Assembly (NCBI GenBank): GCA_010909165.1
Contig: MU008185.1
Coordinates: forward strand, 186,001-250,000
Source of the DNA: Anthoceros angustus
Taxonomy: Eukaryota; Plantae; Anthocerotophyta
Direction: 5' to 3'
Length of the DNA: 64,000 bases
How positions within the stretch are numbered: the stretch's first letter is position 1; every line of letters starts with the position of its first letter. Positions 7,289 through 30,740 of this stretch are shown piece by piece. The position numbers and the translations under genes are program-made. Under the pieces are notes generated by a model that was not told the origin of the DNA, ran no database searches, and was given only the letters and a program-made list of their open reading frames with translations.

Positions 7289-9560
7289 TTGGAGAAATCA
7301 GGAGGCGGGGTTTGTGGGAAGGTCCGTTGGTGGCGCTGGTCCAAAGGAGTTGAGGAGGCACACTTGGGGTTCGTGAGCCGGGATAACGATGAAGTCCGTT
7401 CGGGCGATATAAACTCGAGCGAGAATAAGCACTGGACATTCCTTGAGACGGACTCCTTCCTACAACGACACGGGATTATGCGCGCGCCCGGTCATCATCG
7501 GTACGCCACATCTCATGGGAGCGACTCTTATGCTGACTGGCCGCTGAAGGAGCTTTAAAGAGTGTATCGCTTTGGGCACAAGAGGTATGAGGAGCCTAAA
7601 GGCGTAGTCTTTTGGAATCCCCTTGGGATGGTTTTCGGACCAAACCCGAGAGCACAATCTACTTATCGCTTGATGCCATTTCTTGGATGGACAATGCTTT
7701 TATGTTTATGGCGGCGGCTTCCTAATTTGGAAGTATTTAATCTACCCGGCGTATACAAAGTTGGAAATATGGCGTTGTACAAGCGTCGGTCACAGCTGCT
7801 CATACGCTATGTGAAGTATCCATGGTTCTTAAAAGCGTGGAAGCAACTTCCCCGGTAAAATCCAGTCAACAGTTTTCAACATGCTTTCTTGAGCTGAAGA
7901 GCACTATCGCTAAATACAAAGCACAAGCAAGATCAAGGTAAATTGCACCGATGTTTCTTTCATGTGCTTGTTCCTCGTTGTTGAATGCCTTGCCTATCAT
8001 CGCTTGGATGTACCCTTCTTGTCTTCTTACATCATGATCGATTCATGTGTAGCACAATGATGCTTCCAACCCTCTGGGCGGGTTGGTGGCCGTGGCCGCC
8101 GGGGCAGCCTCCCGGTTGGGCGCCGGCGGCTGGCGCCTGCAGCACTCTGTTATGATGATTCGGAGGGCCTCCCAAATCATCGTCGTGGCGAAGGCCGGCC
8201 CCTTCCCCCATTTGCATTGCATGAATGTTTGTAGGCGTCTTGCAGCTTTTGTATAGGTTGGATGGTTCTCTGCAAAGTCGAGCGGGATGGTGATGATGGG
8301 GTCTTTTTCTTGATGATGTTCGTTTTGGCACGAAATACCGGGTTGCCTTGAAGCACATCGTGTGCGGCTCCACCGAGCAGCGGAAAATGGCTAAACACGG
8401 GAGCAAGAGCTATGTGGAGCCACATAAGTATATCTGCTATCAATTGATGGAATGGACCAAAAAGGCAGAGATACCTCATCTTCTCCGGTGGCGAAAAACC
8501 TCGTAGAGGGTTATTCGATCCACGTGGTTGGGTGCATGATTCACAACTATCGCTTAAAAGCTAGAGCCTATTTGCATTATGCGAATCTGGAGCAGCGAAT
8601 CTTCGATCACCATTATTCGAGGACGTTATACATAACTACGAGGGTGTCACGCCAAGAGTTTTGTACTTGCGGTTGGACAACACATGCGGGGAGAATAAGA
8701 ACCGGCTGCTTTTGCTCCGAACATGCTTGTTGATATGGGTACTTTTGAAAAAGTGAAAGTGGGATTCCTTTTGGTCGGACATACTCATGATCAAATCGAC
8801 GGATGTTTTCTTGCTTCTCCAAAAGCTTGAAACATAAAGCTCACCGCTTCCGCATTGTCGAGAGATCACGGTGCAGCGTACACGCCTAGACGAGGTCAAG
8901 GTATTGGTAGTGGCCGACTTCCGTCATATGTGGCCCATTACACAAGGCCGGAGAGGACTCGATTATGGGCGGCGGTTAAGAGAACAACCTATCGTTCGGC
9001 AGTTCAAAATAACACGTGAAAAAGCGGCCGTGGGTTTGTGGCGATGATCGAGCAGGTTCGACCTCGCCTCGATTAGAGGCGAAGGGGTTTGGAGTTTTGA
9101 AATTCGTGCCTTGGACACTATAATTTGCGCCCTTGGCACTGCGGTCGAGGGATAAAAAAGCCACATGATATTATCTCCAAGCTGCGGTAGTTGCTCATCT
9201 AAAGGCTGGGTCTTGCGAACTTAGGCCGTATGTGACATCAGGAGTTTTATGGTGGGAAGCTTTACGGGTGGACGAGGAGGAGATTCTTATTGTGGAAAAC
9301 AACATTGGCCTTGTGCTACACAAACCTTGGAGGTGGTACGATCTGAAGTGCAAGGCCTGACCCAACCTCTGCATGTTCGGATGAAGCACTTCTTTGGAGG
9401 GCATTCTTGAGGCTCCACAGCGAGATATGTATTTGGGAGCATACCAAAATCTGGGGAGGCAACAACGAAATGTCACGGTTGAATGGTGATATCGAAATAA
9501 AGCGGGAATGTTAGTTCTGCGGTTCCGGCACCGACCGCAAAATAGGCCCTTTTTGGATTG
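7289..9560 (+). mobile_element. Frameshifted DDD/E transposase, Sola-like motif set
   Basis: IDGMDQK (8443-8463), LYLRLDNTCGENKN (core 8673-8702), VGFLLVGHTHDQIDGCF (core 8777-8800), N-terminal RLPN..NLP....W..LP..QQFSTC and C-terminal GMLV...RPFWIGKV. Superfamily assignment is from remembered motifs, not an HMM. Confidence 0.75.
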
Positions 9561-9639
9561 TGTTGAACTATGCACGAGTTCATTATCGGATGGCGGTAGG
9601 GAAGGCGGGAGGCGGCTGAGGCCCGAGGAAGAATATCCA

Positions 9640-10680
9640 ACAAGTTTTGTTCACCAAAGCAGTCATCCTCTATTATGGGTTCACTGTCTTGAAACATTTG
9701 TATTTGTGGATAAGAAGGCCATAAAAGATAAGTTAATTGAATTGCGAGGTTTATTCAACCAGCGAGTCAAAGTGCAACGAGGGGCCGTGAAGAGGATGGT
9801 CGGGATCTGGGGCCAGAAGATGAAGGCGTGGAGTCGGGCGAAGAGTAGGAAACACTCGAATGATCATCATTTTCGCAATTGATGAGGTTGTCGTCATGCT
9901 CTATTCACATGTAGTTTGCGTGCACAATGTATGCGTGCACATTTCGAATAGTATATGCGCCCATGCATAGGCTTTTGGTTGTGGCTATCCTCTATGAGAA
10001 GTTGTAGACTGTCATAGATATTATCTTCCATTTTCAAGAGTTTGTGCTTACCATAGAGAAGGACACGTGGGATGTGGCCCGGGGCCGACATCGGCATTGC
10101 GGCATAATGTAAGGCATCATCGTTGAGCGGGCGGGCATGTTCCTCATGCGTCATGGCGGGAACTAGTTTCTAAGTTCATTTGCGGTCGGGGGCTGGGCAG
10201 TCAATATATTTGCGACCACAATTGAGGCATGCGGAAGCCATCCCCACCCCAATCCAAGTCTTTTCAAACCAAATCCGAGTTAAGGCACTGCAACTCCGCC
10301 ATTCGCAAGGATCATCGGCATGGCGGGGAAGGGCGCCGGCCGGCGTCCTTCCTCAAACACCTTTCATACCACGCCCGGTAGTCTGTCCTCAAAGTTTCAT
10401 CACCCTTCTTTTTGTAGATTTCATTTTTTCCTCCACGGAAAAGAGAAACTGGCGGCAATGGCCTTTGTCATGGGTCTTAAATGCGGACCAATTGAGGTAA
10501 CTCTAACACCATAACCCTTCGTTGAATGGATCTTCTATCAACTTTGGTTCATGCGATTTGTCACCCTTCTTTTACTGTAATTGACCCCAAAAAGTGGGAG
10601 TTCAATGCCCATGTGAAACCCCTTGAGGAGGATATATGTCACAAAACCCTCTTCGTGAATATTCACCTTGAAGATATCAT
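9640..10680 (+). pseudogene. 5' part of beta-class DNA methyltransferase-like gene MTase-2 (inverted copy ~12650-13700)
   Basis: KLIELRGL (ORF 9508) resembles GLIDLKGM of the 27 kb paralog; VDFIF-PPR motif-IV-like at 10414-10438; same sequence as rc 20905-21960, which continues into SAM-binding motifs. Confidence 0.5.
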
Positions 10681-13600
10681 GTTTGTAGGGGCACATAAAT
10701 AAGGCCAAAAAGGTTTTACATGTTGTATACAAAGCGAATGTGGGAACATAACATCAACCAACAAATGATTTTCAAAATAACACGATAAACCTTCAAGAAT
10801 ATACAAACCCCTCTTGATTGTTGGTGACCTCTTGACAAAGATCACACCTTTCGAAACTATGTTTTTCCAACGCTTTGTAATGATATGTCCACCCTTGTCC
10901 GATGGATCCCATGTTGGAAACGGTTTACGCCTGCTCCATGTGTGCATGTAATAATGACTGGTTGGCCGGGCGTTAGTTGGACCTCGTGTGGTGACCACAT
11001 GGGTACTCGAGACCCCTCGAAAGTGTTTTTTGTTTTGTGTTTAAGTTGTGAGAATCGTGTGGAGTTGGAATGTGAAGTAGGTTAGGAAATAAGAAAAGTC
11101 TACTAGAGCCTAGTAGGAGGAAGAGAGTCTAGTCCCGATCCGACGGAACCTTGGAGGGTTGGGCTCGACCGTTGCTAGCTGTTGCTAGGGCCGTTGATAG
11201 CAGGACTGTTGCTATGACAACAACAGGAGCTGTTGCTATGGTAGCAACCAAGTCGGAGTTATTTTCCGATAAATTCGGAAAACCTATTTGGGCGAAATCA
11301 CGAAATACCGGGAAGTAGAGGAACATGGAGGTACTTGATCCATGCCTTGACCGGATCCTACCTATGGGTTGGACTCTTATGGAGGAGACTTTCACCGACC
11401 CATCCGATTCAAGAGCTCACCGAGGAGGAGTACTGAGGCTATGTTGCGAGCACAAGAGAGGGAGGAGTCCTCGAGGAGGTGGAGATTTTGTGGGAGAGTT
11501 TGCCCAACCAGCCAAGAGGGAGGAGAGCAGAGGAGAGCATGGGGCTAGGAGGCCTAGAGAGATAATAGGGGTAAGTGACCACGAAATAGGCATGTGCCCA
11601 TGTGCTATAGATGGTAGAAATCTTATCTTCTCTCTTAGTGGACAATTAAGAGATAGGCCTCTAGGACTGGTAGGCTAAGACCGATTGGTATTTTTGGCAA
11701 GCCAAGCTATTTCAGGTCACTTACCCCTATTATCTCTCTAGGCCTCCTAGCCCCATGCTCCTCTTGCTCTCCTCCCTCTTGGCTGGTTGGGCAAACCTCC
11801 CACAAAATCTCCACCTCCTCGTAGGACTCCTCCTCTCTGTGCTCGCAATAGCCTGTACTCCTCCTCGGTGAGCTCTTGAACTCGGATGGGTCGGTGAAAG
11901 TCTCCTCCATAAGAGTCCAACCCATAGGTAGGATCCAAAGGCCAAGGCATGGATCAAGTACCTCCATGTTCTCACATTCCCCTGCATTTCCTCGTGATTT
12001 CGCCCAAATAGGTTTCCGAATTTATCGGAAAATAACTCCGACTTGGTTGCTACCATAGCAACAGTTCGAGTTTGTTGTCATATAGCAACAGTCCTGCTAG
12101 GCCCCTAGCAACGCGTAGCAACCCGAGTACCAACCCTCCAAGGTTCCCCAGTGATCGTGACTAGACTCTCTTCCTCCTACTAGGCTCTAGTAGACTTTTC
12201 TTATTTCCTAACCTACTTCACATTCCAACTCCACACGATTCTCACAACTTAAACACAAAACAAAAAAAACACTCCTTTTCGAGGGGGTCTGAGTACCCAT
12301 GTGGTCACCACACGAGGGTCCAACTAACGCCGGCCAACCAGCGTCCGTTTATTACATGCACACATGGAACAGCGTAAACCGTTGTTTCCAACATGGGATC
12401 CATCGGACAAGGGTGGACATACGTCACAAACGTTGGAAAAACATAGTTTCCAGAAAGGTGTGATCTTTGTCAAGAGGGTCCACCAACAACCGAAGAGGGT
12501 TTGTATATTCCCCCCCTTGAAGGTTTATCGTATATTTTGAAAATCATTTGTTGGTTGATGTTATGTTCCCACATTCGCTTTGTATACAACATGTAAAACC
12601 TTTTTGGCCTTATTTATGTGCCCCTACGAAACATGATATCTTTCGAAGGGGTGAATATTCAATGAAGAGGGTTTTGTGACATATATCCTCCAAGGGGTTT
12701 CACATGGGCATGAACTCCCACTTTTGGGGTATGGGTCAATTACTGAGAAAAGAAGGGTGACAAATCGCATGAACCAAAGTGATAGAAGATCCATTCAACG
12801 CCGGAAGGGTTATGGTGTTAGAGTTACCTCAATTGGTCCGATTTAAGACCCATGACAAAGGCCATTGCCGGAATTGCCGGGTCTTTTCCGTGGAGGAAAA
12901 ATGAAATCTACAAAAGAAGGGTGATGAAACTTTGAGGACAGCTGACTACCGGGCGCAGGTATGAAAGCAGTTTGAGAGGAAGGACGCCGGCCGGGCCCTT
13001 CCCCCATGCCGATGATCCTTGCGAATGGCGTGCCTTAACTGGTTTGATTTGAAAAGACTTGATTGGGGTGGGGATGGCTTCGCCTCAATTGTGGTCGCAA
13101 ATATATTGACCGCTCAGCCCCCCCGCACATGAAATGAACTTAGTCGGAAACTAGTTCCCGCCGCCATGACGCAGAGGAACATGCCCGCCTGCTCAACGAT
13201 GATGCCTTACATTATGCCGCAATGCCGATGTCGGCCTCGGCCACAATCCCACGTGTCCTTCTCTATGGTAAGCACAAACTCTTGAAAATGGAAGATAATA
13301 TGTATGACAGTCTACAACTTTTCATAGAGGATAGCCACAACCAAAAGCCATGCATGGGCGACATACTATTCGAAATGTGCATCGCATACATTGTGCACCG
13401 CAAACCATGGAATAGAGCATGACGACAACCTCATCAATTGCCCTACGAAATGATGATCATTCGAGTGTTTCCTACTCTTCGCCCGACTCCACGCCTTCAT
13501 CTGGCCCAGATCCCGACCATCCTCTTCACGCTCGGTTGCACTTTGACTCGTTGAATAAACCTCGCAATTCAATTAACTTATCTTTTATGGCCTTCTTATC

Positions 13601-13829
13601 CACAACAGACAAATGTTTCCGCAGGCTGAACCCATAATAGAGGATGACTGCTTGGTGAACAAAAACTTGTTGGATATTCTTCGACGGATAGCCTTCGCCT
13701 GCCTCCCCGAAGTTGCTTCCCTACCGCCATCCCTCCGATTATATATTCTTCCACGCACTCCCTTCATACGCATCTGTGTTCGCCTGCACTAATGAACAAG
13801 GAAGTGAGGCTCGTGCATGTAGTTCAACA

Positions 13830-16100
13830 CAAGTCACCTTGCCAATCCAAAAGGGCCTATTTTATGGTTTGCGCTGGAACCGCAACTAACATTCCCGCTT
13901 TATTTCGCGATATCACCATTCAACCGTGACATTTCTTGTTGTTGCCTCCCAGATTTTGGTATGCTCCCAAATACATATCTCGCTAGGGAGCTCCTCAAGA
14001 ATGCCTCCTCCAAAAAGGCTTCATCCGAATAGGTTGGGTGGTTTTGCACTTCAGATCCGTACCACCTCCAAGGTTTGTGTAGCAAAGGCCAATGTTGTTT
14101 TCCACAATAATAAAGAATCTCCTCCGGTCCACCCGTAAAGCTTCCCACCATAAAACTCCCCGATGTCACATACGGCCTAAGTTCGCAAGACCTTTAGATG
14201 AGCAACGGCAGCTTGGAGATAATATCATGTGGCTTCCTTTTTATCCCTCGACCGCGGTCGTCAAGGCGCTTTATTATAGTGTCCAAGGCACGAATTTCAA
14301 AACTCCAAACCCCTTCGCTTCCCAATCGAGGCGAGGTCGAGCTTGCTCGATCATCGTTACAAAACCCACGGCCGCTTTTTCTTCACGTGTTATTTTTGAA
14401 CGTGCCGGAACGATAGGTTGTTCGCTTAACCGCCGCCCATAATCGAGTCCTCTCTCGCCTTGTGTAATGGGCCACACATATGACCAAGTCGGCCACTACC
14501 AATACCTTGACCTCGTGTAGGCGTACGCTGCACCAGATCTCGACAATGCGGAAGCGTGAGCTTTTTATGTTTCAAGCTTTTGGAGAAGCAAGAAAACATC
14601 CGTCGATTTGATCATGAGTATGTCCGACCAAAAGGAATCCCACTTTCACTTTTCAAAAGTACCCATATCAACAAGCATGTTCGATAAGCAAAAGCTGGTT
14701 CTTATTCTCCCCGCATGTGTTGTCCAACCGCAAGTACAAAACTCTTGGCGGACACCGTAGTTATGTATAACGTCCGAATAATGGTGATCGTAAGATTCGC
14801 TGCTCCGCAAATTCGCATAATGCAAATAGGCTCTAGCTTTAAGCGATAGTTGTGAATCATGCACCCAACCACGTGGATCGAAATACACTCTCTACGAGGT
14901 TTTTCGCCACCGGAGAAGATGAGGTATCTCGCTTTTTGGTCCATTCCATCAATTGATAGCAGATATACTTATGTGGCTCCACATAGCTCTTGCTCCCCGT
15001 GTTTAGCCATCATTGCTCGGTGGAGCCGCACACGATGTGCTTCCAAGGCAACCGGTATTGTGCCAAAACGAACATCATAATCAGCAACAAAAAGACCCCC
15101 ATCATCGCCCATCCCGCCCGACTTTGCAGAGAACCATCCAACCTATACAAAAGCGTTGTAAGACGCCTACTAACATTCATGCAACAAGAAGGGGGCCACG
15201 GGCCGCGCCTTCTCGCTACGGGCGGATGATTTGGGAGGGGTTCGAATCATCATAAGCAGGTTGCAGGCGCCGGCGCCGCGCCTGTGCGCCCAACCTGGGA
15301 GGCTGTCTCGCCGGGCCCGGCCGCCGGCGCCCAGAGCGGCCGCCCGCCGAGGGTTGGAAGCATTGGGCAGTGCACATGAATCGATCATGTAAGAAGACAA
15401 GAAGGGTACATCCGGTGCCGATGATAGGCAAGGCATTCAACAACTGGAGGAACAAGCACATGAAAGAAACATCGGTGCAATTTACCTTGATCTTGCTTGT
15501 GCTTTGTATTTTATAGTGCTCTTCAGCCCGCGAGCATGTTGAAAACTGCTGGACTTCGGATTTTACCTGGGAAGTTGCTTCTCCACGCTTTTAAGAACCA
15601 TGGATACTACATAGCGATGCCGTAGCCAGACCGACGCTTGTACAACGCCCATATTTCCAACTTTGTATACGTGTCGGGTAGATTAAATACTTCCAAATTA
15701 GGAAGCCGCTCGCCATAAACATAAAAGCATTGTCCATCCAAGAAATGGCATCAAGCGATAAGTAGATTGTGCCTTCGGTTTGGTCCGAAACCATCCCAAG
15801 GGGATTCCAGAAGACTCGCCTTTAGCTCCTCATACCTCTTGTGCCCAAGGCAATACACTCTTTGAAAGCCTTCAGCAGACAAGAGTCGCCTCCCATGAGA
15901 TGTGTGGCGCGACTTTGATGGACACCGGCCGCATAATCCCGATCGTTGTAGGAAGGAGTCCGCTCCCAAGGGAATGGTCTCAGTTTATTCTCGCTCGAGC
16001 TCCTAAAATTTATCGCCCGAACGGACTTCATCGTTGGGTCCCATGCCCACAACCCTAAGTGTGTGCCCTCAACTCTCTGACCAGCGCCAGCCCACGGACC
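13830..16100 (-). mobile_element. Inverted second copy of the transposase
   Basis: Reverse complement of 7289-9560; GHTHDQ codons at ~14610-14635 and MDQKAR in ORF 14702..14944. Confidence 0.75.
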
Positions 16101-19100
16101 TTCCCACAAACCCCGCCTGGATTTCTCAAGACTACCGGAGTGTTTAACGACGCTGCTCCTTCGCCCACGACTTAGCGCCCTCAACTCGTCCGCCACAACT
16201 CCACCTCAACACACACGCCAGAACTCACCCTTCTCCCTTATCCATTCCCGCCTAGTAGTCACAACACCAACACATGGCTGTATTCACAGCCGCTTTGCCC
16301 TCCTACCGCTCACGCTCATGGAGAAGTAGCTTGCACTGCATCCCCGCTCCAAAGCAGCCTCCAAGGATGGCTTCCGCACAGAAGTCACCCCTAAGCGCCT
16401 CCTAATCCTCCTACGCCCACTGCTCATGGAGAAGTGGCCTGCAGCATCCCCACGCCTCCGCTCCAGCAGCCTCCAAGGATGGCTCAGCAGTCACCCCAAG
16501 CGCCTCTAATCCCCTCCTACGCTCAGAAGTGGCTTCAGACTGCATCCCCTGCCCAGCAGCCTCCAAGGTTAGTCTCGCACCCGAGAAATCACCCAGCACC
16601 TCCCGAGCTCGTCCGATCCCGGCCTCGCACCCATCAAGCGTGTTGAGCTCGTCACCGAGCTCTAAACACATCCTCTACCACCAATTAATCCCGTGACGGT
16701 GACGCAGAACTCACTCCTCCTCGAGCACTAAGGCAAGAGCACGAGCCAAGATGGTACCCGGATAGTCCGCCTTGGACGCCAGCCTTCCTATATACTCTAC
16801 CCCTAACCTAACCCGCCTATGTATGTATCCTAACCTCGCTATGTATGTACCCTAACCCTGGTCGTGTAACCACGGATTTAGCTCATCACGCTACGACTTC
16901 TGCACCACCCCGCCAAACAAGAGATCCATGCCAGCGATGCCCACCAAACTAAACCACCACCACCTGGCCGGACTCACGACTGACCACCACTCCGGGACCT
17001 CTCGGACGGACCACCCGCCTGACCGACCTGACCATCCTGACCGCCCGGACGGACCACTGACCGCCTCGAGACTGACCGCCCGACGGACCACTGCTCGACC
17101 GCCGACGGACCACTGCTGACCGCCTCGGACGGACCAATCACGGACCTCGCCCGACGGACCACCGACCTCCTCCTGACGGACCACTTGACCGCCCCGACCT
17201 ACCGCGACCCCGCCGACCTGACCACTGGCCTGACCGCCGACCAATTCGCCTGACCGGACGGACCCTCCGTCGGACCGCCCGGACCCCGCCTCGGACCGCC
17301 CGGACGGACCATCGGCCGACCGCCCTGACCACTCACGCCTGACCGCCCGACGACCACTCCTGACCTCCAACGGACCGAGGGTCTAGGGATTGCACCAGTG
17401 CAATCCGCCAAAATGGCCTTATTGGCTAACTCCTCCCTATCCCTCTTAACAACGACCCAAAACAAAACAAGCCTAAGACAAGTCGCCAAGAGTACGGACA
17501 TCGGATTTGGCACTCCACATACTCCCTTCTCATCTCTGGCGGCCCGCCAACACCCTGCTTCCGCCTCCGCTTGACGCCCTTCGCCTTTTACTACCTCCTC
17601 GTGTCGCAAGTCCAGCAACATTGTCATCCTTTTACCAAGAGTCCTCCGAGGATGAGCCTCCTCCGAGGTTGATGTGCCCTCCCCGCCTGCCCATCTTCTT
17701 TCTCCCTTTGAGCATGCCGGGCCTTAGATTCGCACCCCTCCCGGCCCCTGCATCCTCCCTACTCAGATACTCCACAACCGCCCGACCATTACACCCATCC
17801 ACAACCGCAACTGGTCCATTCTACTCCTACCTACTAACTCAGCAAGAAATTACAACACTATTCCCAAGAACGGCTAAAATGTGGCGCGACTTTCGATGGC
17901 CACCGCTACAGACAATCCTGCGTCGTTGTAAGGAAGGAGTCCGCTCCAAGGGAATGGTCTCGTGCTTATTCTCGCCTCGAGTTTACAAATTATCGCCTGA
18001 ACGGACTTCATCGTTGGGTCCGCGGCTCCACAACCTAAGTGTGTGCTCCTCCACAACTCTTGGACCAAAGCGCCAGCCCACCGGACCTTCCCACAAACCC
18101 CCGGATTTCCAAGATTAATGAATAAGTTTAACGACGCTGCCCTTCGCTGCCCACGACTCCAGCGCCTGGCCTCCTCAACTCGTCCGCCACAACTCCACCT
18201 CAACACACACGCCTGTAACCTACCCTTCTCCTTATCCATTCCCGCCTAGTAGTCACACACCAACACGCTGATGTATTCACACCAGCGCTTTGTTTCCCCG
18301 CTTCACGCTCATGGAGAAGTAGCTCACCGCAACCCCACAGCCTCCGTTCCAGCCTCCAAGGATGGCTTCCGCCCAGTCACCCCAAGCGCCCTAATCCCCT
18401 CCTACCGCTACGCTCATGGAGAAGTGGCTTCACCGCATCCCCACACCTCCGCTCCAGCAGCCTCCAAGGATGGCTTCACCAAAGAGTCACCCCAAGCGCC
18501 TCCTAATCCTCCTACCGCTTCACGCTCATGGAGAAGTGGCTTCAGCACTGCATCCCCACACCTGCTCCAAAGCCTCCAAGGTTAGTCTCGCACCGAGAAA
18601 TCACCGCGAGCACCTCCTCGAGCTCAGTCCGACCCGGCCCCGCACTCAAGCGTGTTGGCGGAGCTCACACCGAGCTCTAAACACATCCCTCTACCACCAA
18701 TTAATCCCGCATGGTGACGCAGAACTCACTCCGCCTCGAGCACAAGGCAAGAGCACACTGAGCCAAGATGGTACCCGGGATAGTCCGCCGCCTTGGACGC
18801 CAGCCTTCCTATATACTCCCATACCCTAACCTAACCCGCCTATGTATGTATCCTAACCCCGCTATGTATGTACCCTAACCGGTCGTGGTAACCGGACGTA
18901 GCTCATCATCGCTACGGACTTCTTGCACCACCGCCTCGCCAAACAAGAGATCCATGCCAAAGTATGCCCACCAAACTAAACCACCGGCCAGACCACTCCG
19001 GACCTGCCGGGCAGACCACTCTTCCTCATTCCCTTCACTAGTCTAGTACTCACCTTGTGTTTTGAGTTTTCGTGTGTTGGAGGTCGGGTGTTTGGGAGAA

Positions 19101-20559
19101 GAGGCGGGAGCCCGTGTGTGAGAGAAGACAAGGCGGGAGCCTGTGTGTGGAGGAGAAGTCAAGGAAAGTCAAGTGAGTTGAGGCCGTGGGCTTGTGTGTT
19201 TGGAAAATGAGAGGAAAAGTGAACTGTGAGAGAAGTGGAGAATCTGGACATGGAGAGTTGCTGATTGGCTGTTTGAGAGGAGTAAGAAGGACTGGAGAAG
19301 TCTGTAAGTGATGTTTGTGTTCTGAAGAAGAGTGAGTGGAGGTTGAAGATCCGTGAGTGGATGAGACGGAATGATTGCGGAGGTAGCTGAACAAGTATTT
19401 TGAGAGTTGGTGTGCTGTAAGGGCCTGGATGAGAACCTTGTAAGGACTGAGAGGTCTGTGGTCTGAAAGTGGAGATTGAATGGGGCGTGAGGTGTGAGAA
19501 CAAGGAGAGTTGAAGAGAGTTCTTTGGGAGACTTGGAGTGTGGGGAGGGGAGAGGCACCTCAAGGGGGCTGAGAGCCTGGAGAGGTATGGAGCTTGGAAG
19601 GTGAGCTGAAAAAGGAGGAGAGACAAGTCTGAAGTCTTGCAAGAGAAAGGGGTAGTTGTGTGAGTGCAACCCTTTATCTGTGAGTTGTCCTAGGTTTAGG
19701 TTTAGAGATTAGGGTTAGGGCCTGCTTAGGTTGTCCATAAATAGTGTGTGGAAAAGGTGGTGGCTAACTCGATTGGTGGATCTAACTTTGTGGATAGATA
19801 AGAGAGAGGGTGTCCAACCTTATCCACTTGGATCCCCAAGTGGGTCCCACCCTTCTATTAATAGCGGACTGATCCCAAGGTGGACCCCACTCACTGCTAA
19901 AAAGAGGGTGGTTGCTAAGATAGCAAGATGCGTTGCTAAGGTATAGCGTGGCTAAGATAGCCACAGTGCAGTGTTGTTAGGATAGTAGCACAGTGCATGC
20001 TAGATGTTTGGTGTCTCGTGTTTGGTTGGATTGGCTATGTTTTGGTTGTCTTGACACGAAATCACTCCCTTGAGTGCAGATCTCAAGTCTACAACGATAA
20101 AGAGGGTAAATGTGGCCTCTTTGTGACACTTGGTTTAGAAAATCACTCCACACCTCGTCAGCAATGGTCCATAATGTAGGAAGGAAATTAAATTTCCCAC
20201 TTCAACGTTTTTTTCACCTAACTATCACGGTGGCCATTCTTGATACCTCTCCACCACAAAACTTATCGTTTTAGTACCGTCAGAAAATATAAAGGCGTCT
20301 ACAATGGATCATTGGGAGGACTCAATGCGACTCGTCTCTGTCACATAGTCTAAGACAACCGCTAGGTTTCTAATCGCTCTACTTCTTAAGTCTTCAAATT
20401 CGTCATTTTCTTCCAAGGCCTTCGTCTTCGGCACATCACACTTGGGTGGTCACCGGGAGGCAGTGCCATACATCATCAACGTTTGCGCCCATCTTCCAAA
20501 AGTTCACTGTTGTAAATGCAACCTCCACGGCACTCAATGAAACAACTTGTGCCCTTGAG

Positions 20560-21960
20560 GACTATCTTTTCTGATACATACCTCCTTTGCGGAAGCTGAA
20601 GGTCTTACGATGCGGTTGAAATGTAAGCTCTTCCTACGCATGGAAGGACCTCATAGCCATGTATTCGTTGAGGAATGTACCACCGCACATCTCAATCTGC
20701 CTCAAGCGCAATGCGATTAAATATGAGGACTGACAAGTGTGGTGGTCCTGGCGCACGCATGCATCAAGAACCCGGTCCCTTCTTTTGAGAAGGTCCTTAT
20801 AAGTTTCATAAGAAGACCAAGTGGGCGTTGATAAGGGCATACCACCCTTTGTCATTCGGCAATAGACCTTTCTTCACCATAGTGGCGTATCCTATAACCG
20901 ACCTCCCATTGTTGAACGTAACACGATATCTTTCGAAGGGTGAATATTCACGAAGAGGGTTTTGTGACATATATCCTCGGGGTTTCACATGGGCATTGAA
21001 CTCACTTTTGGGGTATGGGTCAATTAAAGGAGAAAAGAAGGGTGACAATTCGTATGAACCATTGATAGAAGATCCATTCAACGCCGGGTTATGGTGTTAG
21101 AGTTAACCTCAATTGGTCGCATTTAAGACCCATGACAAGGCCATTCTGCCGTTTTGCGGTCTTTTCGACAAAAATGAAATCTACAAAAAAGAAGGGTGAT
21201 GAAACTTTGAGGACGGTGACCGGCGGCGGTATCAAAGCAGTTTGAGAGGAGGGCGCCGGTGGCGTCCTCTCATGCCGATGATCCCTTGCGAATGGCGGCG
21301 GTAGCGGGCCTTTAGTCGGTTGGTTGAAAAGACTTGAGATTGGGGTGGGGATGGCTTCCATGTCTCAATTGTGGTAAAATATATTCACATGCTTTAGTCC
21401 CCATCGCAATCGATGAACTTAAAAGTGTCGGAAACTAGTTCCGCCGTCATACGCGCAGAGGAACATGCCAACGGCTCATCGTGTGTTGCCTTTCATTATG
21501 CCGCAATGCGGCCTATCACACTCCACATGTCCTTCTCAATGGTATGGACAAACTCTTGAAAATTGGAAGATATTATCTATGTCAAGTCTACAACTTCTCA
21601 CAGAGGATAGCCACCACAATCCTATCATGGGCGTAGATACTATAGAATACCTTTGCTCACGGAATGCCGGCAAGTGCTTTGTCATCAGTGTTTCCTACTC
21701 TTCGACTCCACGCCATCATCTTATTTGGGCCGGCATCATGACCATCCTCTTGTCCTCGGTTGCACTTTGACTCTGGTTGAATAAAGCCTCGCAATTCAAT
21801 TAACTTATCTTTTATGGCCTTCTTATCCACAGTACAAATGTTTCCAGTAGTCTGAACCCATAATAGAGGATGACTGTTTGGTGAACAAAAACTTGTTGGA
21901 TATTCTTTGATGGATAGCCTTGCCCCGTCTCCCGAGTTGCTCCTGCTTGCCATCCCTCGA
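20560..21960 (-). pseudogene. Beta-class N4C/N6A DNA methyltransferase-like gene MTase-2, most complete copy, frameshifted
   Basis: Minus strand from 20842 reads VCPYQRPLGLLMKLIRTFSKEG / DRVLDAC / ..TTTLV / NRIALEAD, matching the HPxQKPxxLxxxLIxxxSxxGDxVLDxxxGSGTT...hhhE pattern of N6_N4_Mtase enzymes. Upstream TFNNGRSVI and downstream EELTF...KGGMYQ are shared with MTase-1. Confidence 0.7.
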
Positions 21961-23199
21961 TTAAATATTCTTCCACCCTCCTTCATACGCATCTGTGTGT
22001 TGATTCTGTACCAATGAACAAGGAAGTGAGGCTGTGCATGTAGTTAACACAAGTCACCTTCCCAATCCAAAAGGGTCTATTTTGCGTGTCGTATGAGGCA
22101 ACTAACATTCCCTTTATTTCTGCGATATCACCATTCAACCGTGACATTTCTTGTTGTTGCCTCCCAGTTTTGGTATGCTCCCAAATACATATCTCGTTGT
22201 GGGAGCTCCTCGAATGCCTCCTCCGGTGCTTCATCCGAACATGCTGAGGTTGTGCCTTCCACTTGATCGTACCACCTCCAAGGTTAGTCTCGACCCGAGA
22301 AATCACCCGAGCACCTCCTCCAGTCCCATCCGTCCCCACCCATCAAGCGTGTTGGCGGAGCTCGCCACCGAGCTCTAAACACATCCTCTACCACCAATTA
22401 ATCCCGCATGACGCAGAACTCACTCCCTCCTCGAGCAGGAAGGCAAGAGCACGGAGCCAAGATGGTACCCGGATAGTCTGCCCTTGGACGCCAGCCTTCC
22501 TATACTCCCATACCCAACCTAACCCGCCTATGTATGTATCCTAACCTGCTATGTATGTACCCTAACCCCGGGTCGTGGTAACCGGGACGTAGCTCATCAC
22601 CGCTACCGGACTTCTTGCACCACCGCCTTCCGCCAAACAGAGATCCATGCCGCGATGCCCACTCAAACTAAACCACCCGGCCACTCCACCTGCCGGATTA
22701 CCGGACGGACCACTCCACGACCTCCCCGGACGGACCACCGCTACCCTCGCCTGACGTGACTACCTGTCGGACCCACGACCACTCGGACTCGCCCCCGGAC
22801 GGACCACGCCTGGACCGCCCGGACGGACCACTCACGGACCCTCGGACGGACCACCCGCCGGACCTCGCCCGGACGGACCACCTGGCCGGACCTCGCCCGG
22901 ACGGACCACTCGTCGGACCTCGCCCGACGGACTAATCAGACCGCTCGGACGGACCATCTGCCTCGCCAGACCCTGACGGACCACCGGCTTCTGACCGCCC
23001 AGACCAAAGTCTAGGGATTTAATCGGCGTAATAAATGCTTTTATTGGCTAACCTCCTATCCCTCTTAACCGTTGACCCAAAACAAAACAAGCCTAAGACA
23101 AGTCGCGAGTACGGACATCAGTTTGGCACTCCACAAGATGTGTGACCGCTTTCCTTCTATCCCGTGCACTCCATCGGCAGAACAGGCGAAGAAATGTCT

Positions 23200-24250
23200 C
23201 TGTTCGCCTCCCCATCCGAAAGCGGTATCATTGCACGAAATCGCTCTTTGGTCGCTTGCAAACACATGTTGTTGCAACAAGGCTTCTTGAAATCTGCAAG
23301 CATTGTCTCCCTTCACTTTTGTCAACGACACTCACCGCGTCTCGGCATGATAGAGTACTTGCGGTTGTCGGGGCCTTCAAAGTCTCACTTAGAGGCTTGG
23401 ATGGAAGGATTGAGAGGCATCGGTGTGGAGTGGGAATCGTCGTCCCCAGGGCCTTCATCATCCGGTGAGTGGCGAGCAACAATATCCTCATGAAACAAAC
23501 CACGGCGTGGAACCATCGATGTCTCCCAGGGAAGGTCACGAGACATTGGGAACGAGAGAACGGCGTTTGGATGGCTTCCTCCAAAGCGACATAGCGATGC
23601 AAATTCCTAGGTGTTCGAGGACACCTCGCGGGACATTTGGCGGCGACAAATGTCGGCGTTTTCGTCTGCTGCAAGAGCAATGTCCGAATATTGAGGGATC
23701 ACACCATGTGGATTTTCACATATCGTCAATTATAATCGAAGGGAAGAACCTTCATCATCGTTCTTACAATGGCAAAAGCGCACCACGGCGGTGTGCGATG
23801 TCGTGATGTGGCGGCCTTTGGACCTCCTCCCTTCTCTTGTTTTCGGTGAAGCACGAGGACATTGGGAAGGCAAGTCTTGATCCCAAAGATGATCACGATG
23901 GCCGATGAGCCCACAATGAACTTAGAACTTAGAATCAAAACAAACCGCAAGGAAAGCGTAAGCTGATGCGGGGCGAAGAACTCAAACCTCTTGTCCTTCC
24001 GGTGTGTGAGGCGCAACATTGTATGCCCTCTCGTTCAAGAACCTTGCGGCGCCCTCGCCGTGGGGCGAGGCGAGATTTGAAGGAAGTTGCATGCGAATGG
24101 CGGTGTGTGCCTTACAAGGCATATCGCAAATATAGGAAGGACATTATTTCTCTCTGTCGTTACGACATCATGAAGGTCTATCAGTGAGAGGTATCCAACG
24201 GTGCATCGCGCCGTCATGCCTTTTTATGGTCGACAATTATGTTGCCCCGG
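23200..24250 (-). pseudogene. JmjC/cupin-like 2OG-Fe(II) dioxygenase candidate, frameshifted
   Basis: CLVTFPGRHRWFHAVV (His in 23501-23515) resembles the JmjC P..WxHaV strand; an H-R-D motif is encoded at rc 23892-23900 in a shifted frame between FIVG and NVLVLH...GGPK. Confidence 0.45.
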
Positions 24251-24694
24251 CCAGCCGTCACGGAAGTCAATGTGATCATGAATAGACAAGAGTTTATATT
24301 ATGGCATAGCGAAATAGGGTGGAACGTGAAATGTTAAGTAGGTTTTTGGTCTATAAATGCCTGGGGGCAAGGGAACCCTAATTACAAACCTCTCTCTTGT
24401 CGGTTGCGAGGCGGTGTGCGGTGTGGGCGTATTTCCAGTCAGGAGGCAGTGAGCGGCATACACGTGTGTTGCTTGGCGAGTTGGAGAACAATTGCGGTTG
24501 AATTGCTTTGTCCCTTTGCGGCCCGCAGCGGAATTCAGCGATGCGGCAGTCGAGCTTTGGAGGCGATGGCGCAATCGGTCGGCGGGTTTTGCGAGACAGT
24601 TGGCCCCTCCATGTGATCGAGCATCACCTTCCTTCCATTCATCTTTCCAGACAGTTGACGATTTGTCGCCGCCTTGTGAGTTTGCTTTGCGCAA

Positions 24695-25429
24695 TTGAGA
24701 TGGCGGCGGAGGCGGAGCAAGAAGGACTTAGCGGGCGGTGGCCGACCCCAGGCGCCACCGCGGCGGAAAAGCGAAAGGCGGAACAAGGCGGCTTCAACCC
24801 GACGCGAAGGTAAGCGGTCGGGAGGCGGGAGGTGTGGGAGGCATAAACCATCTATGGAGGCAAAATGGGAGCATGTCTTGAGGAAGACAAGCCGGACAAA
24901 AGCTGGCGTGCAAGGGTGGGAAGGAGGCTCAAACCTCAAAGCATGTGGTGCCACCTCCAATTCCATCGCCTTTCAGCTACGAGGAAACCGTGCACATCCG
25001 CAGGGAGGCCAGATTGACCCTGTTATGATTTTGCAGAAGGATTGGATGCTCGTCCAGGATCCGCATCCAGAAGAGGAAAGCAAGACATGGGCGCTGAAAC
25101 TACGGATAATGGGTGCGGGGGCTTTGCCCAATCAGAGAGCAAGAGCTGGATGGGTAATCTGGGCAACAATGGATATGAATGAGGGGGAGCCGGAGTTCAC
25201 GCTGTTTTGCACCACCAGGCCATATGAGTTTGATGCTGATCCGGGACCACGATATATCTGGTCTTATGTTCTCGACCTCGGAGGGTTCAATGCCAAGAAA
25301 TGTGCACCTCGCTCACTTGTCGAAGAGTTCCACAGTGCATGCGACAACCGTAAGTTGGAACAAACAATGTCTTTTGAGAACCATGAGGCTAGGATGAGCG
25401 TGATTTTCGCTTTCTCTGTTTCCGGCTAG
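24695..25429 (+). CDS. Uncharacterised element ORF (244 aa), possibly the N-terminal part of the ParB-MTase gene
   Basis: Open frame with a globular-looking C-terminal half (DWMLVQD...KTWALKLRI...AGWVIW...EFTLFCT), downstream of a TATA-like ctataaat at ~24350. Confidence 0.45.
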   Translation: MRWRRRRSKKDLAGGGRPQAPPRRKSERRNKAASTRREGKRSGGGRCGRHKPSMEAKWEHVLRKTSRTKAGVQGWEGGSNLKACGATSNSIAFQLRGNRAHPQGGQIDPVMILQKDWMLVQDPHPEEESKTWALKLRIMGAGALPNQRARAGWVIWATMDMNEGEPEFTLFCTTRPYEFDADPGPRYIWSYVLDLGGFNAKKCAPRSLVEEFHSACDNRKLEQTMSFENHEARMSVIFAFSVSG

Positions 25430-26199
25430 TCGGAATGGCCCTCATCGAGGCTATTTGCGGAAGATTACGGCGATGTGGATCACGGAGAGAGCTTTCAATG
25501 AGAAGGGTGAGAGCAGCCCATCAAAGAATTGCGGAAGAGGCGGAGTCGGGCCCCGGATCCCGAAAGTGAACTTGGGCCCTCGGATGAGGAAGATGGCCCC
25601 ATTCCGACGTCCTCGGGCATTCGGAGGAAGAAGTGTCCGGGGCATGAGGAAGACGGAGATCTTTGGGATCTGGCATTGCATGGGGGTCAATGGTTGTCCC
25701 ACCATGGCCTCTGATCCGGAGCAGGCGGCCGGCCCGGTGTGTGAAGGGTGGGCAGGCGAACTTGCCCACCGGATCCTAAGCGGTTTATCCGGTTTCAACA
25801 AGGAGATGGGGTTGGGGCCGGCGGCGCGCCCCAGAGCGCCATGATTCTTCCACGGACCGCGGTGGAAGAATAGACACCATGGGATCCCCCGAGAGGGAAG
25901 AGGGGTGGGTGTGGGCGGTGGCGGGAAGAGGGGTGGGTGTGGAGGCAGGGGCTGAAAGAGAGGAGGAGGCGCGGCCCGGCCCTCCTCACGCGAGGCGAAG
26001 ACCCGGTGAAGGTCGATGGGAAAGCGCCCTGCTTCAAATTTGGATTCTATGCAGGGGACTACAAAGGCACATAGTGGCGGCACGGAGGCGAAGGAAGAAA
26101 AAAACCGAAGAAGCGGCGGTGGAAGATCCGGTTGGAGTCATTCAGGTCCATATTTGACAGAACGGTTAGAAGACGCGATCCGGGATGCACCCCTCTCTC

Positions 26200-28230
26200 G
26201 CTGAGGATTGACTTCACGAAGAAGGTGGTCTTGGAAACGTGTTGGTCAAGTTGGAGAACTTAAGACCAGCGTCGCACATAGGATCGCGCAGATTCGGTTG
26301 ATGAGGCATGGGCCAATTATTTGGCTAGGGTTATTTCGAAGGGAGGATAGAGGAGGGTGTTTTGCCACTCTTATGTATGATAGATCCAAGTGAGTGCTGA
26401 CCTCGGCAAGCGGAAGATGGCGGGCGAAAAAATACGTTATGGGGTTCTTGGTGGGAACCATACATATGCGACCATGAAACATCTATGTGATATCTCACCG
26501 TGGAAGAAGAGGTTTCAATATGTGGAAGCACATGTCTATTGTGGGCTTCTTGGAAATCAGTCTTGTACGGATCACAATACCATGTCGGACGGAAGAAAGA
26601 AGATGAACTTCATTGAGCGGTCCGGTGCCACGAGATGAGCTGCAGTTGCGAAGCGAAAGTGAGATGACCATGGCATGGAAGTACAATGCATGTACAAAGT
26701 GCTTGGATTGATTGAGGATGATGAAGGGCGAAGGCGATGTCTACAAGCGAACAAAGTAGACAATCGCACACATTTTATGCATCGCCATGGCGAGGAGGAA
26801 GGTGTGGGACAATGTGGACTTGATTTTTCAAAGTGGGAGGTGGAGAGCTTGAGCGGAAGAAGCATTTACCTGAGGACTAGCAAGAAAGGGAAAGGAAGGA
26901 AGATGGTGAGGAGAAGCAAGTGGACACAGTATACGTAAAGCCAAAGGACATGTTGGCAAAGCCATGGAAATCCTTCCAAGGAATACCAGCTGGAGAGTGC
27001 GGGCAGCAAATTCTGGTCACAGCTACAGAAAAAGTTTTAACTGGACTTATTGATTTGAAGGGCATGGACGAGGAGATCACTTTGCGGAAGAAGTTCCATG
27101 TCATACAAGTTGCTATGGTAAAACACCTGGGGTGCTCTTCGTTCGCTGAGGTGCGAGAAGAATATCCGTTGCATTCGACAGACCAGATGTTGTCCCGCTT
27201 TCAAACTGCTTTTGCTGGAAAGGTTAGTTTCCTGCCCATGTGTGTTCGAAAAGTGCGGGGAGGCGCGGCCGGCCTCTCTGTCTTTGCGTTTGACTAACCA
27301 TCATGTGTTTGGCAGCCGAAGGATATTGAGGTCCTTTCCAAACTTCCGATGTCTTCCAACATTTCATTTTGAGTAAATAATTGGAAAGGGGCTGGAGACG
27401 ACGGCGTGCTCTGCGAGACAAGGACCTTGAGGAAGGATTGGAGGTCTTCAATGTTCCATCCTCGGACAAACAAGTACAATACCAAGTGGAAAGCAGGGAT
27501 GTTTTGGACATGCGAGGATTTCTGAGAGGCCGGTACACACCACTGGTGATGGACGTTCCAAGGGGGTTTCAAATTGGGCCCTTGGACAAACGAGTTGACA
27601 TGCAGATGATGGACACTATTTTGCAGAGTTTTGCGGAGAAAACTACTTCGGATGAGTTGAGAATGATTGTCATGCATGGTGTGGAGGAGGCTCACGTGAG
27701 GGAGTCAATGCGAAAGTGGAGCAAGAAAGGGGCTTGGTCTCATTTGTATGGGACAAGACCAACATGAACAATGACGGTGGATTGAAACCGTGGAATATGT
27801 CACGGTAGGGTGGGGCATGGGAGATGGATTCACGAGGATAGAGTTCCAATGATGCCTAATGCCATGCACGGCACTTTCAACAATGGAGTGCAGCGATCGC
27901 ACGATACGGTTGTGAAGAAAGCAGTGTACATGTCCCAAGACAAGCTGGTTGTTTGCCCATACGAGGCCTCGGGCTTATGATGAAACTTATCGAACCTTCT
28001 CGCGAGAGGGATTGGATTTTGGACGTATGCTCGGAAGTGGGACAACGTTATTGGCTTCCTCATGCGTGGAATTGTATTCTTGTTGAAGGACGAGGTGTCG
28101 GGATACATACCACCGCATTCGGGCATGAGGTTACGCGATCTTTGAAGAAGCGTTTGACGCCCACCGCAGAGGTCTTGCGCTTTAGGCGAAGGAGGTGTGT
28201 ATCGGTGAGAAGGACTCCACAAGCGCAGTT
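26200..28230 (+). pseudogene. ParB/Srx-like domain fused to beta-class DNA methyltransferase (MTase-1), frameshifted
   Basis: LVKLENLRP..SVDEAWANYLARVISKGG..YGVLGGNH (26450-26461)..VYCGL..DHN; LVMDVPRG motif-IV-like (27543-27566); CPY..P.GLMMKLIE..DWILDVCS(G)SGTTLLAS (28022-28060) and NCILVE (~28071-28088). Motif order IV then I indicates the beta class. Confidence 0.75.
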
Positions 28231-29699
28231 GTTTCCTTAAACGCAAGGCAAGACCAAAAGCGGTGATCTTTTGGCGGATGGGCAGCAAACTTTGGAAGTG
28301 TGGGCCTTCCCAGCCGACGGCGGTGCAAGAGAGAAGACACAAGGGCGTTGGGGAGAGCGATAGCCGATGAAGAGGAAGTGGGCGCTTAATCTGCTATTGT
28401 GATGGATTGAGTTTTCTACCCGAGTCCCAAGTTAGCCCTAAGGAATAGGCTTAGTGTTCTCATGTCATGTGCATCCGCCGCTGCTTAGTTCATAATCTTG
28501 GGACCGTTCATTGCGGCAAGTGTTGTCTTGGTTTTAAGGCCCAAATAACAATGAAGGGCGCGGCCGGCGCCCTCTATCCGCTTTCATGTCTTTGTTGCGC
28601 CGAACACGTTTTTGAATACCTACGTGTTCTACCATGGTCGACCTTTCTTCAAAAGAGCTAAAAGGCATATGGACCGTGTGTCATGTGCAAAGAGGGTTTT
28701 CATTTCACGGAAGGGGGTTCGGATATTCACCCCCTTCACAAGATATCGTGTTCCGATGACTTGCAGCTGGATCTTTTTGATTGGTGCGCCAAATGTCCAG
28801 CTCATTCGAGTTTGATGCACGTATAGATGCATGGGCCTTGGTTTCTAGTTGAGCTACATTTTCCAAAATTCGACATGTATGATGGTGATTTCTAATGGCC
28901 AGCCTTTTGAAGATGACAATGTTTTACAATATTTTGCAGAGAAGCAAGAAAATAAATAGATTAGATGATTTGTCCTTGAGTAATGAAAGCACTGGGGATG
29001 CAATCGAACATAAGTATAAGAGCATACTTTTGCCACTCGACTAGTGAGAGCAGGAGTGTCTGAAGAAGAGGGTCATCGCCTAGTTGGGGATTTTGACCAA
29101 ATGGGTGTATTTGCTGAGGTAAGGAGGACACATGCATACCCACATGGCTTGCGGCCCACTAGAGCAGCTAGGTGTTCGAGACAAACTATAGCCAAGCTTT
29201 GCCGTGAGATTTTGAATTTAAGATCCGACTTGCTCCATGCCGCTTCCATGGGTAGATTAAGGTTGAAAGCGGTATGGACTTGACAAGAAAAAATGTAAGC
29301 TCAAGAGTTTGATCAAGAAGGGTTGAGGGGCCTCACCATCCTTTCATGTCAATTCTGCAGAGGCCTAATGTTGCAGATCTAAGTCACGGCTTATCTTCGA
29401 CATGGAGGGGCTGGTCAGTCGGTGTATACCATCCGGGATTGCTCAATCACGGGGTTTGAAAAGAGAATTGATGTGAGTGTTGGTGTGGTGGTAAGTATGC
29501 ACGGGCAACCTGCAGGCGAAGTGTTTGCCTACACAAGTATTGACGCAACCCTCTCCAAACCCGGTGTATTGCACCTTTCACTTATGCTCCAGTTCTTTGG
29601 AGGATAAGTGCGATCATCGACCACTTGGTACAAATGTATGTCCGCATTTATGCGGAAGGTGGGGCACATTAGGTCTTCTTTGGGCTCGGATGCATGGGG

Positions 29700-30110
29700 C
29701 ATGGGAGATGGATTCACAGGATAGAGTTCCAATGATGCCTAATGCCATGCACGGCACTTTCAACAATGGGAGGTCCGTGATCGCACGATACTTGCCAGAA
29801 GAAACAGTGTACATGTCCCAAGACAAGCTGGTTGTTTGCCCATACCGAGGCCTCGGGCTTATGATGAAACTTATCGAACCTTCTCGCGAGAGGGATTGGA
29901 TTTTGGACGTATGCTCGGAGTGGGACAACGTTATTGGCTTCCTCGCCGAATTGTATTGCGAAGCCGAGGTGGTGTGGATACATACCACCGCATTGCCGGG
30001 CATGAGGTTACGCGATCTTTGAAGAAGAGCTGACGTTTGACGCCCACCGCAGAGGTCTTGCGCAGTTTTGGGCGAAGGAGGTGTGTATCAGCGAGAAGGA
30101 CTCCCTGCAA
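29700..30110 (+). pseudogene. Duplicated C-terminal half of MTase-1
   Basis: ORF 29525 contains HGTFNNGRSVI...VVCPY.GLGLMMKLIEPSRERDWILDVCS. Confidence 0.7.
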
Positions 30111-30359
30111 GCGCAGGTTGTTTCCTTAAACGCAAGGCGGCTAAAGACCAAAACTGGTGATCTTTTGGCGGATGGGCAGCAAACTTTGGACACTGGCAGC
30201 CTTCCCGACCCTTGACGACGCAAGAGAACAAGAAGACACAAGGGCGTTGGGGAGAGCGATAGCCGATGAAGAGGAAGTGGAGCGCTGTAACTGCTATTGT
30301 GATGGATTCGAGTTTTCTCGCCGAGTCCCAAGTTAGCCCTAAGGAATAGGCTTAGTGTT

Positions 30360-30740
30360 CTCATGTCATGTGCATCCGCCGCTTTAGTTCATACCGTGTT
30401 ATGGGACCGTTCATTGCGGCAAGTGTTGTCTTCTTTGCCGCCCAACAACACGAAAGGCGGCCGCCGCCTCATCCGCTTTCATGTCTTTGTTAACACGCTT
30501 TTTTTGAATACCTACGTGTTCTACCATGGTCGACCTTTCTTCAAAAGAGCTAAAAGGCATATTTCGGACTGTGTCATGTGCAAAGAGGGTTTTCATTTCA
30601 CGGAAGGGGTTCGGATATTCACCCCTTCACAAGATATCGTGTTGGTTGCGTTGGATCTTTTTGATTGGTGCGCCAAAATGTCCGGCTCATTCGAGTTTGA
30701 TGCACGTATAGATGCATGGGCCTTGGTTTCTAGTTGAGCT
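30360..30740 (+). pseudogene. RING-like zinc-finger ORF (copy at ~28460-28850)
   Basis: CVMC (30570-30581) then, one frame over, PLHKISCWLRWIFLIGAPKCPAH, giving C-x2-C...H...C-x3-W...C-P-x-H; ligands 3 and 5 are not cleanly seen. Confidence 0.45.

Follow-up and report, generated by a model that had tools for sequence, protein, structure and literature searches.

Probable fragments of a Sola1-superfamily transposon family with a methyltransferase-like accessory gene in the hornwort Anthoceros angustus

A DNA transposon that carries a ParB-linked DNA-modifying gene has been described in Ectocarpus, where the element Sola1-1_Ec32 is 21.5 kb long, has 282-bp terminal inverted repeats (TIRs), belongs to the class with 4-bp target-site duplications (TSDs), and encodes, opposite the transposase, an accessory protein of 1104 amino acids that joins a ParB-like domain to an N4-cytosine/N6-adenine (N4C/N6A) DNA methyltransferase (MTase) domain (Genome Biol 2025, PMC12477816). 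Here, a stretch of 64,000 nucleotides from the hornwort Anthoceros angustus (assembly GCA_010909165.1, contig MU008185.1, positions 186,001 to 250,000 of the forward strand; hereafter the window) is compared with this and related systems. An earlier, sequence-only reading of the window had proposed that positions 7289-30740 form one giant DNA transposon carrying an epigenetic toolkit, which consisted of a transposase, two MTases and ParB-like, JmjC-like and RING-like genes. This span most likely represents a group of two or three copies, dead and fragmentary, of a single cut-and-paste family of the Sola1 superfamily; a DNA transposon that moves by cut and paste and has an accessory gene like a DNA amino-MTase, probably ParB-fused, is supported, whereas the single giant element over 7289-30740 is not, as element termini lie inside the span.

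The hornwort copies and Sola1-1_Ec32 have the transposase core motifs DNT..ENKN and VGHTH.QID in common, and the hornwort unit that is bounded by TIRs (20920-28752) places its transposase remnant and its accessory gene on opposite strands, as in Ectocarpus, with termini (AAC...GTT) that resemble the AACCG...CGGTT of Sola1-1_Ec32. It differs in its length of 7.8 kb and its internal deletion, in its TIRs of about 30 nt, in its land-plant host and in the sequence DVPRGF at motif IV of the MTase-like domain, and the likeness between the two accessory proteins is one of described domains and layout, not of sequence alignment. Sola1 transposases in bryophytes are already known, since the best blastp match of the Ectocarpus transposase is the Repbase entry Sola1-1_PPa of the moss Physcomitrium (PMC12477816).

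Another example is found in the giant Plavaka (EnSpm-like) elements of the red alga Bostrychia, in which PAG2 combines an N6-adenine MTase with a SET domain and PAG3 combines ParB with a 2-oxoglutarate (2OG) oxygenase (bioRxiv 10.1101/2025.02.11.637652). These are also DNA transposons with ParB-linked DNA or chromatin modifiers, their tandem repeat arrays adjoin the ParB gene, and they are the published system that comes closest to the toolkit idea; they differ in that the transposase is of another superfamily, that ParB is fused there to the oxygenase and in the hornwort probably to the MTase-like domain, and that no oxygenase is detectable in the hornwort copy. The fungal KDZ/Plavaka transposons with TET/JBP dioxygenases, as reported by Iyer et al. 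(2014), likewise pair cut-and-paste transposition with a DNA-modifying accessory enzyme, but they have another transposase and an enzyme that oxidises 5-methylcytosine rather than an amino-methyltransferase, and no dioxygenase was found in the hornwort span. In concept, transposons that carry ParB-linked DNA modifiers have already been published, in Ectocarpus Sola1-1_Ec32 and in red-algal Plavaka. Such ParB-linked MTase transposons have only lately been recognised, as a curiosity, and an occurrence in land plants would widen the host range beyond the published algal cases; this locus adds little on the question, as it is badly damaged, with the oxygenase, the RING gene and the giant size not there. 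Bdelloid N4CMT and Marchantia DN4MT1 are host N4C methyltransferases of bacterial origin with demonstrated N4-methylcytosine activity. The hornwort gene resembles them in that a eukaryote has what is probably an MTase-like domain of the beta-class N6_N4 type, and differs in being a broken transposon passenger with a non-canonical catalytic motif.

Transposase, element ends and the bounded unit

The presence of a DDD/E-type transposase, as judged from the sequence, is confirmed. The Pfam family DUF7869 was matched at 8565-8753 (E 2e-6, profile positions 46-86) and at 8699-8827 (E 2e-9, profile positions 82-111), two pieces that overlap, lie in different frames and are collinear on the profile. 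The motifs IDGMDQ, LDNTCGENKN and VGHTHDQID of the window line up, in the same order, with MDGANQ, VDNTVAENKN and VGHTHIQID of the Sola1-1_Ec32 transposase, and because these motifs are common to both in the same order, the assignment to Sola1 holds. The transposase half of this Sola1-type element (copy 1) occupies 7483-10683 on the plus strand as frameshifted pieces, among which the DDD core lies at 8428-8827; its end is the terminal motif ...GATATCATGTT at 10683. A second copy (copy 2) retains a 3' remnant of the transposase at 20920-22288 on the minus strand, which is homologous to 9320-10683 of copy 1 (blastn, 77-79% identity). Since only this part of copy 1 is matched, the catalytic core of copy 2 has been deleted.

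The homology between the transposase sides of copy 1 and copy 2 breaks off exactly at 10683 and 20920, and a terminal sequence is found at this point. The left TIR of copy 2 lies at 20920-20952 (plus strand, 5'-AACACGATATCTTTCGAAGGGTGAATAT...) and the right TIR at 28720-28752 (plus strand, ...ATATTCACCCCCTTCACAAGATATCGTGTT-3'); the reverse complement of the former recurs, with 26 identities over 28-30 positions, at both 28720-28752 and 30611-30643, and 10651-10683 and 12630-12655 match it too. In the window, the terminal motif TTCACCC..AAGATATCRTGTT was found only at the homology breakpoints 10683, 12630, 20920, 28752 and 30643, and a degenerate terminus pattern of this kind is expected there 0.00 times by chance. 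The breakpoints, together with terminal 30 nt repeated in opposite orientation, identify 20920-28752 as a 7.8-kb unit between TIRs of about 30 nt, with termini AACACGATATC...GATATCGTGTT, so that a check for TIRs gave a positive answer. It is the only unit with both ends in the 7289-30740 span.

From left to right, the bounded unit contains the transposase remnant (20920-22288, minus strand), a GC-rich tandem repeat (22275-23135) that meets the remnant in a junction at 22275-22288, 3 kb to which no gene can be assigned, and the accessory gene on the plus strand. With the missing transposase part restored, an intact element would measure roughly 10-11 kb or more. Because its transposase core is lost, copy 2 could be mobile only with transposase supplied in trans by another copy, and no functional transposase or accessory protein is encodable at the locus. 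The tandem repeat, as mapped by self-blastn and a tile map, has a unit of about 2.05 kb and lies at 4871-7483 (minus strand), upstream of the copy-1 transposase, as well as at 1-2600, 15903-18989 and 22275-23135; it contains nested minisatellites with 23-27-nt and 109-112-nt units and a CCCTAACCTAACCC stretch. In bounded copy 2 it stands between the transposase remnant and the accessory gene, and it is a matter of speculation, by analogy with the red-algal repeat arrays that adjoin the ParB gene, that these repeats might serve as binding sites.

These boundaries bear directly on the view that the span is one autonomous transposon of about 23 kb with a transposase, two MTase paralogues, ParB, a JmjC-type oxygenase and a RING E3. 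Algae do have giant elements (15-30 kb) of the Sola1, KDZ and EnSpm types that carry accessory genes (PMC12477816), red-algal Plavaka elements join an MTase gene with a ParB+2OG-oxygenase gene, and noise in the sequence could conceal weak domains in the span. Termini nevertheless lie within it at 10683, 20920 and 28752, the segment 11660-18424 is a mere inverted repeat of 4871-11660, the second MTase falls beyond the TIR of the unit to which the first belongs, and neither Pfam, pattern search nor the Atlas gave a signal for JmjC or RING, so that a giant element is hardly credible. Divided at its termini and breakpoints, the span consists of a truncated copy (to 10683), its inverted duplicate, a fragment of a third copy, the bounded and internally deleted copy, and a tandem duplicate of the right end.

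Duplications and sequence quality in the left half

Self-comparison of the window (self-blastn and tile map) shows that its left 32 kb are a patchwork of repeated segments. Inverted pairs are formed by 4871-9560 and 13843-18424 (81% identity, self-blastn), by 1-1792 and 6651-4871 (opposite strands, 98-100% identity) and by 2610-4298 and 19010-20648 (88% identity, self-comparison), while 9588-13732 is a self-palindrome (87% identity, self-blastn); in sum, 11660-18424 is an inverted duplicate, on the minus strand, of 4871-11660, with the centre of the palindrome at about 11660 and arms that are 81-87% identical. At the right end, 29695-31601 is a tandem duplicate, on the plus strand, of 27811-29704 (blastn, 89% and 94% identity), which contains the 3' end of the MTase-like gene, a right TIR whose last position is 30643, and 0.95 kb of flanking sequence, and an additional partial repeat of the same region follows at 31601-32387. 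Palindromes are nested over 1-6651 and 4871-18424, with other arm pairs being 78-88% identical and differing mostly by insertions and deletions (indels).

Between duplicated segments there are 40-60 gap openings per kb, indels (counted as gap columns) make up two thirds of all differences, and a 2.1-kb global alignment of palindrome arms contains 38 mismatches against 103 indel events. This indel-rich pattern is the error spectrum of an unpolished long-read consensus and is unlike sequence decay. For the A. angustus genome, Nanopore reads were put together by wtdbg and the resulting assembly was polished with Illumina data (PMC7027989). When 156 Illumina-derived contigs of the same sample were compared over 22900-28899, they aligned solely as 100-300-nt pieces with many gaps between them; 26 of the 156 matched at 99% identity or above, and none aligned to 23700-26300. 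Owing to this patchy coverage and the indel-rich spectrum, reading frames in the 22900-28899 region are not trustworthy. The frameshifts pointed out in the sequence-only reading are real and pervasive, with the dense frameshifting being due to the unpolished nature of the consensus. While long exons of an ordinary kind are present in the right half of the window (33-64 kb), the left half contains no exon of more than about 250 codons.

Judged by the error spectrum, the palindromes and tandem duplications are probably fold-back or assembly artefacts. It is also conceivable, if unlikely, that they are biological, having arisen by transposon-driven inverted duplication and nested insertions, and that the copies decayed in place. 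DNA transposons are able to generate inverted duplications, the arms 1-1792 and 6651-4871 are 98-100% identical, which is not expected from independent read errors, and the 26 Illumina contigs mentioned above have at least 99% identity to the 6-kb stretch. Set against this are the excess of indel events over substitutions between arms (2.7 to 1), which is unlike normal decay, the reduction of the Illumina matches to short, gapped pieces with none on 23700-26300, and an assembly procedure (wtdbg/Nanopore with Illumina polishing) that leaves multi-copy regions uncorrected. The practical value of the locus is as a warning, in that the assembly here is fold-back-like and unpolished and reading frames in its left half are unreliable.

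The accessory gene

The accessory gene of copy 2 begins with ParB/Srx-like motifs at 26300-26560 (plus strand, three-frame reading), namely IEEGVLPLL at about 26.34 kb and YGVLGGNHTYATMK at about 26.44 kb. In an hhalign comparison with seven ParB-like nuclease proteins, YGVLGGNHTY falls on the DGFHR column, at a P of 0.046 and a probability of 1%, which lacks significance. Of the ParB-like domain that had been proposed, two motifs on the right columns remain, and a Pfam match and significance are missing. A 1451-nt RNA contig of a sister species (run X17) matches 26297-26381 at about 88% identity. A homologous accessory gene thus seems to be transcribed in the sister species, and no RNA contig of the host species aligned to 22900-28899, so that a check for transcripts was positive for the relative only.

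Further 3', at 27471-28160 on the plus strand, lies a frameshifted beta-class N4/N6 DNA MTase-like domain, which was recognised by hhalign and by hmmsearch of a read-through. In a three-frame reading, its blocks follow one another across frames as RDVLDM..YTPLVMDVPRGF, then VWDKTNMNN...HE, then VVCPY...LMMKLI-TFSRE-DWILDVCS-SGTT, and the C-terminal block at 27.95-28.07 kb occurs again at 29.8-29.95 kb in the tandem duplicate. The profile used for comparison combined YhdJ of E. coli with ten methylases of phages, 11 beta-class enzymes of diverse kinds in all, and from one phage locus, which also contains Shiga toxin genes, the methylase coding sequence alone was taken; a homologue search from YhdJ alone yielded only close orthologues and was too narrow for a useful profile. 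When the C-terminal block of two divergent copies was aligned to the 11 MTases by hhalign, 37 columns were matched with 88.6% probability and a P of 2.7e-6, a value that is optimistic because the read-through frames were picked by eye with the motifs in mind; the region aligned in the MTases is HPxxKP...LI..S.eGD.VLDPF.GSGTT. The read-through, with X at each frame switch, scored 12.0-12.9 bits in hmmsearch, as opposed to a maximum of 2.1 in 300 shuffles (0 of 300 reaching it), and single-frame open reading frames (ORFs) with MTase blocks rank 2nd, 3rd and 13th among the 2425 ORFs of the window with the 11-enzyme profile. As the frames were chosen with the motifs known, the profile match is moderate support.

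The order of the blocks agrees with that of beta-class enzymes, since the S-adenosylmethionine (AdoMet)-binding motif I (ILDVCS-SGTT, 28016-28047) lies 3' of DVPRGF and of the W-x-K-x-N block, although it is read only across frame switches, and in the alignment to the MTase profile the W-x-K-x-N block, too, takes its proper place in the order. The motif IV position reads VMDVPRGF at 27552-27569 and not (D/S)PP(Y/F/W), for which a sequencing error is possible, and no [DNS]PP[YFWH] occurs in the accessory gene in any frame. Taken at face value, such a change at the catalytic motif is a hint that methylation may not be the function of the domain. Contigs of sister-species DNA (2-5 kb) match short stretches at 26296-26388, 26693-26731, 27022-27066 and 27737-27780, and the contig that matches twice does so collinearly and with matching spacing, which are independent signs of a real accessory gene. 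An MTase-like gene at 27.47-28.16 kb is probably real.

The second of the two MTases in the sequence-only reading corresponds to 20453-20887 (minus strand), an MTase-like C-terminal fragment beyond the left TIR of copy 2. Four collinear tblastx blocks join it to 27902-28317, for example VVCPYQRPLGLLMKLIRTFSKEG versus VVCPYE..GLGLMMKLI/RTFSREG, it is the best or second-best match to the MTase profile among the 2425 ORFs (the two MTase-like fragments together take ranks from 1st to 3rd), and it has no similarity at the DNA level to the first MTase-like gene. Its position outside the left TIR and this lack of DNA-level similarity mark it as the 3' fragment of another, third and divergent copy; it is neither a paralogue inside one element nor a fusion to the transposase. 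What had been taken for two paralogous MTase genes are fragments of two element copies, of which only one lies within the TIR-bounded unit. A nesting of copy 2 in the MTase gene of copy 3 was considered and rejected, as there is no convincing N-terminal half of an MTase to the right of copy 2, and DIYPRGF at about 20.97 kb (plus strand) was rejected as a second motif IV, being a chance string in the translated terminal repeat region.

A number of results weigh against the interpretation given here. With respect to the accessory gene, no single-frame piece matched Pfam N6_N4_Mtase or ParBc even at E<=10; a phmmer search of the 128-residue piece with motif IV (27381-27764) in 1.84 billion proteins retrieved no true relative (three giant repeat proteins that it matched are spurious, their scores being built from many sub-threshold repeats); comparison of the same piece with PDB sequences gave chance matches only; and an AlphaFold model of the piece alone was unusable, with a predicted local distance difference test score of 36. 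To these may be added a tblastn search against plasmids and phages, with chance matches only, and an Atlas feature search of the MTase piece, which returned only unrelated, low-scoring clusters. A search of public sequencing runs with the noisy stretch itself matched no run. With respect to the unit, a check for TSDs found no readable 4-bp duplication at 20920/28752, with ACGT on the left against CCGA or GGTT on the right, in noisy sequence whose left flank is a fragment of another element; for the Sola1 superfamily, a 4-bp TSD with an AWWT-like target is given in what PMC3845634 cites from Bao et al. (2009). The tandem repeat and the segment 23135-26200 may be either parts of the family or insertions, and it is from the error spectrum that the palindromes are taken to be probable artefacts.

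The negative Pfam, phmmer, PDB, tblastn and Atlas searches, together with the missing DPPY, the lack of significance for ParB and the choice of frames by eye, would be in line with an over-reading of noisy, repeat-rich sequence, in which all gene-like signals other than the transposase are illusory and there is no MTase or ParB gene. This is judged quite improbable, given that two divergent copies share the C-terminal block, with stretches conserved at the protein level, that this block falls on the right columns of the MTase profile (with the W-x-K-x-N block in the right order), that stretches of the gene are conserved in the sister species and one of them matches an RNA contig, and that the same pairing has been published for Sola1 in Ectocarpus.

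If the span does consist of dead Sola1 copies, a complete element of the family would carry a DDD transposase and, on the opposite strand, the accessory gene. In intact members, the ParB-like domain might bind repeats within the element and the MTase-like domain might mark the element's own DNA; alternatively, with DVPRGF in place of DPPY, the latter might be only a DNA- or AdoMet-binding module.

The internal segment and other features of the window

Between the tandem repeat and the accessory gene of copy 2, the internal segment 23135-26200 has no assignable gene and is negative in Pfam. It includes the ORF that had been called JmjC-like (23231-23698, minus strand). Among 86 pieces of at least 28 residues from both strands of 23.0-26.5 kb, no cupin, JmjC, 2OG-oxygenase or RING family of Pfam was matched at E<=10. 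The recognition score of the ORF in the Atlas (1124) is far below that of known families and in the range of shuffled sequence, which is of a non-protein kind, and an Atlas feature search returned only unrelated, low-scoring clusters. A search for the iron-triad pattern found a sole HxD...H string, of 44 residues and by chance, and an ORF of 249 residues at 24680-25426 had no homologue in a protein homology search. A JmjC-like gene therefore finds no backing, and the RING-like gene fares no better, since a regular-expression search over all six frames of the whole window, with stops allowed, found no C3HC4-type zinc-ligand spacing and the pieces scanned contained no zinc-finger or RING family of Pfam. 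As noise lowers sensitivity, support for JmjC and RING is absent rather than their absence proven, and this limit on the JmjC negative matters because red-algal Plavaka elements carry a ParB+2OG-oxygenase gene. With neither a detectable dioxygenase nor an E3/RING module, the toolkit shrinks to one accessory gene.

It is very improbable that intact family members possess, hidden by noise in the 23135-26200 segment, a further accessory gene (for example a 2OG-oxygenase-like gene, as in PAG3) and that their DVPRGF domain has a changed chemistry or is purely DNA-binding. If this were true, the oxygenase-like gene and the altered MTase-like domain would make up a transposon-borne pair of writer and eraser in a land plant.

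Elsewhere in the window, long clean exons at 45120-46819 (plus strand) were judged by eye to belong to a photolyase/cryptochrome-like gene (...LLYEPWEIFDERGQAFTKFSGFWKK...), and an ORF at 62518-62952 (plus strand) contains a reverse-transcriptase-like string (...LLLDFYKAYDTVEWHFL..., by eye) and is probably a fragment of a retrotransposon without long terminal repeats (non-LTR). A tRNA gene is present at 49546-49616 (plus strand; Rfam RF00005, 60.5 bits) and is flanked by two paralogous ORFs, at 48833-49312 and 50071-50529 (plus strand), that resemble secreted proteins and are about 68% identical in DNA (48991-49307 versus 50151-50463).

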